From: Macrostomum hystrix | Lineage: Eukaryota > Animalia > Platyhelminthes | Length of the DNA stretch: 64,000 nucleotides | Reading direction: 5' to 3' | Assembly (NCBI GenBank): GCA_950097015.1 | Contig: CATNEN010000011.1 | Location: forward strand, 6,262,001 to 6,326,000 | Shown: positions 59,059 to 63,204 of the stretch, one piece after another | Layout: each line of letters opens with the position of its first letter | Position numbering within the stretch: the stretch's first letter is position 1 | Notes under the pieces: model-generated | Seen by the model: only the letters and a program-made list of their open reading frames with translations | Databases searched by the model: none | Told to the model about the DNA's origin: nothing | Translations under genes and position numbers: made by a program

Positions 59059-62000
59059 ATGGATGCCAGGACTGCCGCAGTGAGGTGAGACTGACTACGA
59101 GCTAGACACCATGTACTAATTTATTTGCATTTTATTTGTAAATTTCAGCTGAATCTCAAATTAGATTTCTAGAAATTTGTTCATGATTTGTTCTCTAGAC
59201 AAAATTTCAGCGATGGCAATGGGCCAAATCCACAGGGGAGAGGAGACACGGGAGAGATGGAGACAGGGGGTGAGACAGGGGGAGATGAGACAGAGGAGAG
59301 AAGAGATAGGGAAGAGATGAGACAGGGGAGAGATAAGACAGGGAGGGAAGAGATGAGACAGGGGAGAGATGAGACAGGGGAGAGATGTGACAGAGGAGAG
59401 ATAAGAGAGGGGAGAGATGTGACAGGGAAGAGATGAGACAGGGAAGAGATGAGACAGGGGAGAATGTGACAGGGGACAGGTGAGACAGGGGAGAGAAGAG
59501 ACAGTGGAGAGATGAGACAGGGGAGAGATAAGACAGGGGAGAGATGAGACAGGGGAGAGATGAGACAGGGGAGAGATAAGAGAGGGGAGAGATGTGACAG
59601 GGGAGAGATGAGACAGGGAAGAGATGAGACAGGGGTGAGATGAGACAGGGGAGAGATGAGACAGGGGAGAGATAAGAGAGGGGAGAGATGTGACGGTAGA
59701 GATGTGACAAAGTACTGATTGTGGGCAATCGTATTGTTTGAATGCTTAATGCTTCTGTCTTTCACTCCAAACAGGTGAAGTCAGTGTTAAACTCTTTTCC
59801 ACTTAAGTGCTCTCTCCTTCAGTTCAGTCGCGAGCTGTTTCAACAGAAGAAACAATCAGAACTTTAGCTTCGAGGACTATCGAATTCCATTCGCTCCGTA
59901 GCCGCGGGTCATGCTGTCCGACTCGATTCCTCTGAAAAAAAAGTCTTCTCCTAGGGCGATTCTGCAGTTGCTGGGCAGAACGGGTGCAGCCAAGCGGAAC
60001 TTAATTGCTTCTCTTTCTCTCGAAATCTCTGCCTCTAGAGTTCAAGGCAATGGGATTAGAACAGCAAGGAACTGCATATGGGCTGTGCGTCGCTGAGCTG
60101 CAATGACTGATGCTGGGGCCCTCAGGACAAATCTGCAATCTGTGTGTGTGTGCGTGTGTGTGTGTGTGTGTGTGTGTGTGTGTGTGTGTGTGTGTGTGTG
60201 TGTGTGTGTGTGTGTCTGTGTGTGTGTGTGTGTGTGTGTGTGTGTGTGTGTGTGCTAGCTCTAATCCCAGACGGAATACTAGCAAAATGAATGGTGAGAC
60301 AGTGGAGAGTCGTGAGAGATTAGCAGTCCACTCTAGCCTACAAGTCTGCGACACACTAAGCATATAATATATTGCCCGGGGTTAGATTGCAATTCCTGAG
60401 TTCGATAATGCAGCTCTCTATTTCATTAGTCCCGGATGGCGATATTAGTCGCATGCACAAAAATGTTAATTCTATCTGTTGATGGCCTTGTACTGAAGTC
60501 ATACTAGCCATATGTAGTATGTGTTGTGTTTTTATCTGCCACTAATGAGACAGGGAGAGAGATTAGACAGGGGAGAGATGAGACAGGCGAGAGATGGGAT
60601 AGTGGAGAGATGAGACAGGGGAGAGATGAGACAGGGGAAAGATGAGATAGGGGAGAGATGAGATAGGGGAGAGATGAGACAGGGAAGAGATGAGATCGGG
60701 GAGAGATGAGACAGGAGAGAGATGAGACAGGAGAGAGATGAGACAGGAGAGAGATGAGACAGGAGAGAGATGAGACAGGAGAGTGAGTCGTGAGAGATTA
60801 GCAGTCCACTCTAGTCTACAAGTCTGCGAAGACGAGAAAGACGAGACAGGGAAGAGATGAGACAGGAGAGAGATGAGACAGGAGAGAGATGAGACAGGGA
60901 AGAGATGAGACAGGGAAGAGATGAGACAGGGGAGAGATGAGACAGGGGAGAGATGAGACAGGGGAGAGATGAGACAGGGGAGAGATGAGACAGGGGAGAG
61001 ATGAGACAGGGGAGAGATGAGATAGGGGAGAGATGAGACAGGAAAGAGATGAGACAGGGAAGAGATGAGACAGGGGAGAGATGAGACAGGGGAGAGATGA
61101 GACAGGGGAGAGATGAGAGTCGTACTAGCCATGTCTCTGGCCTTGTACTGATAGTCATAGCCATATATAATATGATGTGCTGTGTTTTTATCTGCCACTA
61201 ATTTATTTCTTCGAGGACATTATCTGATCACGGCTTGCACTGGTATTTACAATTCTGTTATCAGGCTGCTTATCAGTATTAAAGTTCAGATATATCGGAA
61301 AAGTTTAGCCCACGTTCATGGCGATTGGTCGAATATTCTAGGATATACAGAAAAAAATAAATATCCCTGACTATCAGAATTCAGCAAGCCTGGCGAGGTT
61401 GGCAGAACCGAACCGCTGCAACCGCCGGCTCCTCCGAGGAGGACGAAGCCGCCCAGACGACCTCCGGCTACATGAGCGCCAGCAGCAGCGTCGAACGAGT
61501 CAATTCCACGACGCTTACGTTGGCTTCGCCACGGTGTCAGCCGCAGCCGCCGCCGCCGCCGCGACGCAGCTGGACATCAGCCGCTCTGCCGCTAAACCTG
61601 CACCGCTTCGGTGACAGCTCCGGCGACGCCTCGCCAGAGTCGCCATCCTCCTTCGCCGCAGCGTCGCCGGCGCCGGCGCCCCTGTCTGTTGGAGCCTCGC
61701 GGACGGATCTGACGGCCCTGACAAACCTGACGCTAACCACTCGCCGAGATCCCTGGCTGCACAGTCTGGCAGCGGACTACAGAGTGAGTCTTGGTTCCAC
61801 TTAACTCTTTGTTACAGCCTGACTTGACGGCCACCTAACCCTGCTGTATTTCTAGTCGGGTCCCGACGCCGCGATGGAGCTCTGCTACCGCAACGACGCC
61901 GCGTCGGATGTCGGCGAACTGAGCGACATTGAACTGGGCGGCGACGTCGGTGGCTGGCAGAGATATTGCAGACCGTCTCTGTTGAAAGACTCAGAGGTCA

Positions 62001-63204
62001 GTGCTCATTTCCATATTACTGTTATATATTGGAGTGCTGATTCTTTGTAATCTAATCTCGACTATCATTCCTTGGATTGCAGGGCAGTCGATCTCAGCAA
62101 ATCAACGGCAAGTCCGCTTCCCGCTCATTGGTAAGCCAGCTTTGCTACATCTAGTGTTTGTGAAAACTGACCAAATCATTTTGAATTCATTCAATTCAAT
62201 ACAGACTCGGCGCCCTTTGGAGCCAGAACTTCTGGAGAGCCTGGGCCTGGACTGCAATCACGAGATTCTGTCTGTTCACACACGCCTGAGGGGCGAGGCA
62301 CAGATAGCACTGGCTCAGGTGTGTTTGGTCAATGTACATTCTTGGGTTAAAATGTACGCATAGGAATCAGAACGGGGGAGCTTAAATGTACATGTTGGAA
62401 GGAGCTTAGTTTAAATGTACATTCTGGAAAGAGAACAGAAAGCTGTAGAATGTACATATCGAACAGGGGGAGAAGAAAGTTAGGGTAAACTTACGCTAGA
62501 GGGAGAGGAAAGCTCGAATGTACATTTCGGCTAGAGGGAGACGAAAGCTCGAATTTACATCTCGAATAGGAATGGTAGAAAGCTTAAATGTACATTTCGG
62601 CTAGAGGGAGACGAAAGCTCGAATGTACATCTCGGATAGGAATGGTAGAAAGCTTAAATGTACATTTCGGCTAGAGGGAGACGAAAGCTCGAATGTACAT
62701 TTCGAATAGAAAGGGTAGAAAGCTTTAATGCACATTTCGGCTAGAGGGAGACGAAAGCTCGAATGTACATTTCGGCTAGAGGAAGAGGAAAGCTCGAATG
62801 TACATTTCGAATAGAAAGGGTAGAAAGCTTTAATGTACATTTCGGCTAGAGGGAGAGGAAAGCTAGAATGTACATTTCGGCTAGAGGGAGAGGAAAGCTA
62901 GAATGTACATTTCGAATAGGAAGGGTAGAAAGCTTAAATGTACATTTCGGCTAGAGGGAGAGGAAAGCTCGAATGTACATCTCACACGAATTTACTGATG
63001 CAACAGGCTAAACCGATGGCTCGAATGCAGCTGAAGGTTGACAGCAGTCCGAGCGAAGAATCGAGCAGGACGGCTCTCGCCGGCTTCAGCTGGCCAGGTC
63101 GGCTGTCCGAGAAGGACCTGCTGTGCGCCAGCCGCGGCGCCCTCCGCCTGCTGCGCGGCTGCCTGCTGGCTAGAATTGACGGTGATTGCGGAAATAGCTT
63201 ATAA
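59059..63204 (+). CDS. SCHIP1: IQ-motif plus SCHIP1-domain protein (IQCJ-SCHIP1-like); exons 59059-59084, 61378-61783, 61856-61996, 62083-62130, 62205-62318, 63007-63181 or 63204 (C-terminus may lie beyond the window)
   Basis: MELCYRND matches remembered SCHIP1 LQICFVND; LRGEAQIALAQAKPMARMQ matches LQAEAKMALAMAKPMAKMQ; spliced N-terminus MDARTAAVR|IQQAWRGWQNR; all junctions phase-consistent. Confidence 0.82.
59225..59710. repeat. 16-bp purine-rich minisatellite (gagacaggggagagat), first block
   Basis: Degenerate tandem units in IQ-SCHIP1 intron 1. Confidence 0.93.
60141..60254. repeat. (GT)n microsatellite
   Basis: About 57 dinucleotide units. Confidence 0.98.
60547..61118. repeat. 16-bp minisatellite (gagacaggggagagat), second block, with embedded unique insert and duplicated flanks
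   Basis: Same unit as 59225; see findings. Confidence 0.93.
62380..62985. repeat. 35-bp two-variant minisatellite (aatgtacatttcggctagagggagacgaaagctcg / aatgtacatttcgaatagaaagggtagaaagcttt)
   Basis: Alternating units in SCHIP1 intron 5. Confidence 0.95.

Follow-up and report, generated by a model that had tools for sequence, protein, structure and literature searches.

A probable Macrostomum orthologue of IQCJ-SCHIP1 with a single IQ motif, and its bearing on the ancestry of the joined gene

The stretch of DNA considered here, which we call the window, comprises 64,000 nucleotides (nt) of the flatworm Macrostomum hystrix (GenBank assembly GCA_950097015.1, contig CATNEN010000011.1, positions 6,262,001 to 6,326,000 of the forward strand), and towards its end lies a gene whose exons encode an N-terminal IQ motif followed by a SCHIP1-like core (Table 1; positions are counted from the first letter of the window). 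The gene opens with an ATG at 59059-59061 (+), with an in-frame TAG immediately 5' of it, and the coding part of exon 1 runs for just 8 codons and 2 nt, encoding MDARTAAV, before ending at 59084 at gag/GTGAGA (slashes mark exon borders). Exon 2 begins at 61378, behind the acceptor ...ctatcAG/a at 61377/61378, such that the codon split by intron 1 is restored as AG+A, encoding Arg, directly before IQQAWRGWQNR (61379-61411). The initial annotation had claimed that joining these two borders creates an IQxxxRGxxxR motif, and the letters are as it described: the spliced N-terminus reads MDARTAAV-R-IQQAWRGWQNR, in frame with the five later GT-AG exons, and AAVR-IQQAWRGWQNR meets the full IQ consensus [FILV]QxxxRGxxxR, preceded by small or hydrophobic residues. 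This is the only IQ in the protein and starts 9 residues in from its beginning. In the 5' direction the frame of exon 2 is closed by a TAA at 61358-61360 and offers no ATG ahead of the IQ, and therefore an upstream exon must supply the start. Splice borders are GT-AG throughout the six exons, and their phases are compatible. The gene does not end at 63204, as had been annotated; the stop at 63202-63204 belongs to a read-through into intron 6, exon 6 ending at 63181.

The closest protein is PAA81594.1 of Macrostomum lignano (381 amino acids, aa), which starts MDANTAAVRIQQAWRGWQNR, as do other annotated proteins of that species. The M. lignano genes (BOX15_Mlig006465g1 and Mlig027144g2; proteins PAA81594.1 and PAA80178.1; UniProt A0A267G860, A0A267G276 and A0A1I8IPW1) have the same exon layout as the window, including a 26-nt ATG exon and an identical IQQAWRGWQNR, and their protein has the SCHIP-1_C domain; amino-acid identity is only about 56-88% per exon, with heavy synonymous divergence, as would be expected if the window came from a different species of Macrostomum or held an old paralogue. 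In the M. lignano locus used for comparison (L001), the 26-nt coding ATG exon is followed by a 1.86-kb intron and then by the IQ exon. Judged from these comparisons, the window would hold exons 1-6 of an eight-exon Macrostomum orthologue of bilaterian IQCJ-SCHIP1, laid out as a single compact gene, and we place the probability of this reading at roughly 0.84.

The assignment of the core to SCHIP1 in the initial annotation is supported. PAA81594.1 scores 82.3 bits (6e-23) against SCHIP-1_C over residues 141-365, the region to which window exons 3-6 align (Pfam cut-offs were 23.5 bits for SCHIP-1_C, PF10148; 20.3 bits for IQ, PF00612; and 28 bits for PF15157, the IQCJ-SCHIP1 N-terminal family). 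When exon 6 was compared by hhalign with a profile of nine non-flatworm SCHIP1 C-termini, it matched columns 32-85 with a probability of 89.6% (E 1.9e-6), and the end of exon 5 falls on columns 14-31 of the same profile, collinear with exon 6. With exon 6 as query, a full HMMER search gave one true relative, PAA81594.1 itself (record P0001), the other five matches being ankyrin-repeat or low-complexity chance matches. An ESM Atlas query with exon 6 gave no match above 0.78, and a word search with exon 2 was blank, as expected from its length window. The coiled coil LNEELV...RDDLHMEQD...IEDL, where conservation within the family is highest, is present in PAA81594.1 and encoded past the window end: the last two exons (CNSELV...LHMEQD...) lie outside the window, in which PAA81594.1 residues 329-381 have no match. 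In L001 a gap of 1.7 kb separates exon 6 from these final two exons, and the window ends 0.8 kb into intron 6.

The junction between exons 1 and 2 carries much of the argument. Exon 1 is not unique by sequence alone, since the interval from 50 to 61.4 kb holds 155 ATG...GT phase-2 mini-exon candidates, several of which have good donors, and the choice among them was made by conservation. Against M. lignano (L001 10001-10026), exon 1 with its donor shows 85% identity, the donor GTGAG being kept, with the 60-nt flanks at 27-30%, and conservation of exon 2 starts exactly at the acceptor. Intron 1 of the window cannot be aligned with its 1.86-kb M. lignano counterpart, and M. lignano gene models splice at exactly the junction between the 26-nt exon and the IQ exon. 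The 30 codons from the acceptor to an internal Met at 61472 are the best-conserved part of exon 2: 29 of the 30 residues are identical to M. lignano, 13 codons differ synonymously and 1 non-synonymously, and the changes are distributed 1/0/14 over the three codon positions. Ahead of the same Met, in the IQ region, one codon is inserted or deleted in frame between the two species, and the split codon, AGA in the window and AGG in M. lignano, encodes Arg in both. The predicted peptide across the IQ region carries MDARTAAVRIQQAWR.

These features bear directly on an alternative in which the IQ would lie outside the protein, with exon 2 spliced to some other 5' exon or trans-spliced to a leader, translation starting at Met 61472 and the IQ letters forming 5' untranslated region (UTR). 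Macrostomum trans-splices many mRNAs, and the pyrimidine tract of the intron 1 acceptor is weak, both of which count in favour of that alternative. However, a run of codons that retains nearly every residue while accumulating synonymous changes and an in-frame indel is unlike UTR, and the IQ is present in all M. lignano models. Given the synonymous bias of the differences, the in-frame indel and the synonymous split codon, the IQ peptide is, on this comparative evidence, translated and strongly constrained, and the UTR alternative is so improbable as to be effectively excluded. The junction on which the initial annotation had built the motif is supported by its use in annotated M. lignano proteins and by purifying selection on the IQ frame. 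The ATG at 59059 is likewise supported as the predicted start codon by the TAG directly upstream in the window and by the spliced 5' UTR exon of M. lignano, which has an in-frame stop and no ATG after it.

Several points weigh against reading the window as an intact IQCJ-SCHIP1 orthologue. The coiled-coil exons that define the family lie outside the window, such that the intactness of this copy can be judged over the six visible exons, and the predicted gene model is backed by comparison. The window model was searched against Pfam exon by exon, and no exon taken singly (pieces of 38-135 aa) gave a Pfam match. In the orthologue PAA81594.1, the IQ is below the PF00612 cut-off (15.2-16.3 bits, E 0.008-0.018, vs 20.3), and PF15157 has no match at E<=1 in residues 1-140. 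Finally, binding of calmodulin and of partners by the flatworm protein would be carried over from vertebrate IQCJ-SCHIP-1 work (calmodulin, ankyrin), as cited in PMC12190637. A different explanation would be that the window copy is a decaying duplicate, a pseudogene whose 3' end has been lost or broken by repeats or retroelements: the last two exons are not in view, the introns are full of satellites, and the window protein was not found in the searched protein collections. However, the reading frame is open through all six exons, whose GT-AG sites are intact, the exon 2 substitutions relative to M. lignano are biased to third positions (32/16/60), and the length of intron 6 seen here ends short of what that intron already spans in M. 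lignano; we therefore regard a pseudogene as unlikely.

To place the orthologue in a wider context, a word search was made with an abalone protein (P0022), of which the best 120 of 528 matches were listed, and the survey is thus a bilaterian one. Among these best 120, proteins combining IQ, PF15157 and PF10148 occur in many molluscs, Lingula and Tubulanus, and also in sea stars, urchins, a brittle star, a sea cucumber, hemichordates and three amphioxus species, such that the layout in the matches listed spans Lophotrochozoa, Ambulacraria and Cephalochordata. Our own Pfam run confirms all three families in Patella, Branchiostoma belcheri and Tubulanus, and PF15157 scores were 31.2 bits in Patella, 48.6 in amphioxus and 45.6 in the nemertean. 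These non-flatworm proteins carry a pair of IQ motifs, AAxCIQxxxRGxxxRK and ITIQRAWRxYxxRK, with a spacing of exactly 73 residues. Invertebrate proteins named 'IQCJ-SCHIP1 readthrough transcript protein-like' (Haliotis, Patella, Mytilus, Lingula, Tubulanus, Ptychodera, Branchiostoma) resemble the flatworm in having IQ upstream of SCHIP-1_C in one gene, but they have two IQs, a PF15157 match and 540-930 residues, whereas the flatworm form, of about 370-380 residues, has a single IQ and does not match PF15157. An ESM Atlas query with the Haliotis N-terminus returned only generic IQ clusters and one chordate IQCJ-SCHIP1 fragment cluster. Arthropod Schip1 (in Drosophila, Schip1 of the Expanded/Tao-1 Hippo branch) shares the SCHIP-1_C core with the flatworm; among the matches listed, the arthropods with an IQ were a centipede, a scorpion and a horseshoe crab, the insects and crustaceans having PF10148 alone. 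The arthropod record Strigamia maritima T1J4T4 (P0065) joins SCHIP-1_C to an AMMECR1 domain and looks like a merged gene model, not a real fusion.

Intron positions were then mapped by protein-to-locus alignment in Patella vulgata, B. belcheri, M. lignano and the window. The junction before the second IQ reads ...gta atc at/GTAAGT ... CAG/a ctc caa cga gct tgg in Patella vulgata and ...atc gtc ac/GTAAGT ... CAG/g atc cag cga gcc tgg in B. belcheri, and the same junction reads ag/GT...AG/a att cag in the window and ag/GT...AG/g atc cag in M. lignano. A phase-2 intron in the codon just before [IL]Q is common to all four, and each of them has the IQ core and the beginning of the acidic linker on one exon. 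Two further introns are common to Patella and Macrostomum and absent from amphioxus: a phase-0 intron after ALAQ (ALAQ/A) and a phase-1 intron one codon past QIE/RID (QIE-x/).

The initial annotation had allowed for an independent IQ gain, in which case the likeness of the flatworm gene to IQCJ-SCHIP1 would be convergent. Consistent with such a gain, the Macrostomum N-terminus is without a PF15157 match, the AW in IQxAWR is generic among IQ motifs, and the flatworm motif has RG as in the first IQ, yet the position of the second. However, convergence would have to reproduce an intron of identical position and phase one codon before the IQ in flatworm, mollusc and amphioxus, as well as the shared exon for the IQ core and linker start, within an architecture that is widespread, and we hold it to be very unlikely. 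Since the position and phase of this intron are shared with Patella and Branchiostoma, the flatworm IQ is, as far as gene structure indicates, the orthologue of the second IQ in an ancestral two-IQ module, not an independent gain. The failure of PF15157 to match would follow from the first IQ and the connecting helix being gone in the flatworm, only the tail of the PF15157 module surviving in the predicted Macrostomum protein. In neither the window nor L001 did a search of the DNA separating exon 1 from the upstream GCN2-like gene reveal a lost exon of the first-IQ type at E<0.04.

Taken with the IQ/PF15157/SCHIP-1_C proteins across Lophotrochozoa, Ambulacraria and Cephalochordata, the shared phase-2 intron supports the fused IQ-SCHIP1 layout as ancestral to bilaterians, in keeping with the suggestion in the initial annotation that fusion is the ancient state. 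We consider it likely that a single IQCJ-SCHIP1 gene with two IQs 73 residues apart was present in the last common ancestor of bilaterians, that the vertebrate 'read-through' label is an annotation artefact, and that Macrostomum has been pared to 9 residues and the second IQ. Vertebrate IQCJ-SCHIP1 is like the flatworm gene in having an N-terminal IQ-type motif, a SCHIP1 core and a C-terminal coiled coil, with acidic CK2-type stretches between; unlike the flatworm gene, it is annotated as a read-through that spans two genes, IQCJ and SCHIP1, each with a product of its own. Published opinion differs, with Abascal et al. 2018 suggesting that IQCJ-SCHIP1 is a single gene and PMC6764479 treating it as a transcription-derived fusion, and our literature search found no paper setting out the invertebrate distribution or the shared intron. 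The IQ-SCHIP1 architecture itself is not new: public data include the M. lignano orthologue as well as dozens of invertebrate proteins named IQCJ-SCHIP1-like.

Table 1. Coding exons and introns of the IQCJ-SCHIP1-like gene within the window.
Feature	Position	Strand	Evidence or remark
Exon 1, coding part (MDARTAAV + 2 nt of Arg codon)	59059..59084	+	conserved island vs M. lignano L001 10001-10026
Intron 1, 2293 nt, phase 2	59085..61377	+	mostly 16-nt satellite + (TG)57
Exon 2, IQ core at 61379-61411, then acidic/Ser-rich and Pro-rich linker; internal Met 61472	61378..61783	+	alignment to M. lignano
Exon 3, 47 codons, MELCYRNDAASD...	61856..61996	+	start of Pfam SCHIP-1_C match in orthologue
Exon 4, 16 codons, 48 nt, GSRSQQINGKSASRSL	62083..62130	+	88% identity to M. 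lignano
Exon 5, 38 codons, ends ...RLRGEAQIALAQ	62205..62318	+	phase-0 intron after ALAQ common to Patella
Intron 5, with 35/70-nt tandem repeat	62319..63006	+	repeat at 62495-62980
Exon 6, AKPMARMQLKVD...LLARID + 1 nt; donor G/GTGATT, phase 1	63007..63181	+	71% identity to PAA81594.1; hhalign 89.6%
Intron 6, first part	63182..64000	+	holds stop 63202-63204 of earlier reading

Comparison with M. lignano also bears on splicing and on gene copies. Exon 4 is missing from the otherwise matching M. lignano records P0008 and P0009, and is probably an alternatively spliced cassette exon; P0008 includes the translated spliced 5' UTR together with the lack of exon 4, a pattern typical of transcript-derived models. 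M. lignano has in addition two longer SCHIP-1_C paralogues without an IQ, P0010 (548 aa) and P0011 (494 aa), which score 98 and 136 bits against PF10148, and in this species IQ-bearing and IQ-less forms may be divided between duplicate genes, not promoters. The upstream neighbour in both the window and L001 is a GCN2-like kinase gene, and synteny is thus conserved. In the window this neighbour (39867-49780, +) is a multi-exon GCN2/eIF2AK4-like gene with two protein-kinase domains (2.7e-53 and 1.2e-17) and a weak HisRS-like tail; in L001, the gene preceding M. lignano SCHIP1 has an RWD domain and two Pkinase domains.

The non-coding parts of the locus are rich in repeats. Intron 1 contains two arrays of a 16-nt satellite (ACAGGGGAGAGATGAG), at 59232-59709 and 60545-61118, of about 30 and 35 copies, and a (TG)57 tract at 60141-60254. 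A unique 45-nt segment is doubled at 60307-60351 and 60785-60829 (98% identity, 478 nt apart), just before and inside the second array, which suggests a segmental duplication of the satellite array edge. Most of intron 5 is filled by a 35/70-nt tandem repeat (62495-62980, about 7-14 copies), and a perfect (CAG)13 stands at 58911-58950, ~110 nt 5' of the start codon, in what is likely 5' UTR or promoter; it is not found at the corresponding place in M. lignano L001. Two short overlapping open reading frames in different frames (..WSQWVSRFEDFNDASGITNEKQL.. and ..ADIIRENADLTAKAQAGELTLPH..) lie in intron 6 at 63576-63924 (+); neither matches any Pfam family, and together they may be what is left of a mobile element.

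The predicted protein would consist of 9 residues, a single complete IQxxxRGxxxR motif, an acidic/Ser-rich and Pro-rich linker, and SCHIP-1_C with a terminal coiled coil encoded beyond the window. To arrive at this form, the flatworm lineage would have shed the first IQ together with the helix joining it to the second, with the start codon shifted to the small exon just 5' of the conserved phase-2 intron. From what is known of IQ motifs and of vertebrate IQCJ-SCHIP-1, the IQ helix may bind calmodulin, most likely in its Ca2+-free form, as is reported for the vertebrate protein, and the C-terminal coiled coil would oligomerise and dock on cortical partners such as ankyrin/spectrin or Merlin/Expanded-type proteins, and the outcome would be a calmodulin-bearing cytoskeletal adaptor. 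Nodes of Ranvier are not known from flatworms, and therefore the cellular role must differ from that in vertebrates or be more general.

The flatworm gene adds evidence from one more lineage and, at the level of introns, an argument for viewing IQCJ and SCHIP1 as a single ancient gene, not a vertebrate read-through fusion. Current views are not overturned by this, as the databases show the architecture and the 2018 paper suspected a single gene; the relevance is mainly to gene nomenclature and annotation, and to the reading of human association signals given to 'IQCJ' versus 'SCHIP1'. If the ancestor did have two IQs and the flatworm form was pared down from it, the link between the second IQ and SCHIP1 would be suggested as the indispensable core, and Macrostomum would offer a minimal natural form for probing calmodulin control of SCHIP1 in an animal without myelin or nodes. 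Macrostomum is tractable for transgenesis, and the 380-residue, single-IQ form could serve as a convenient test object.

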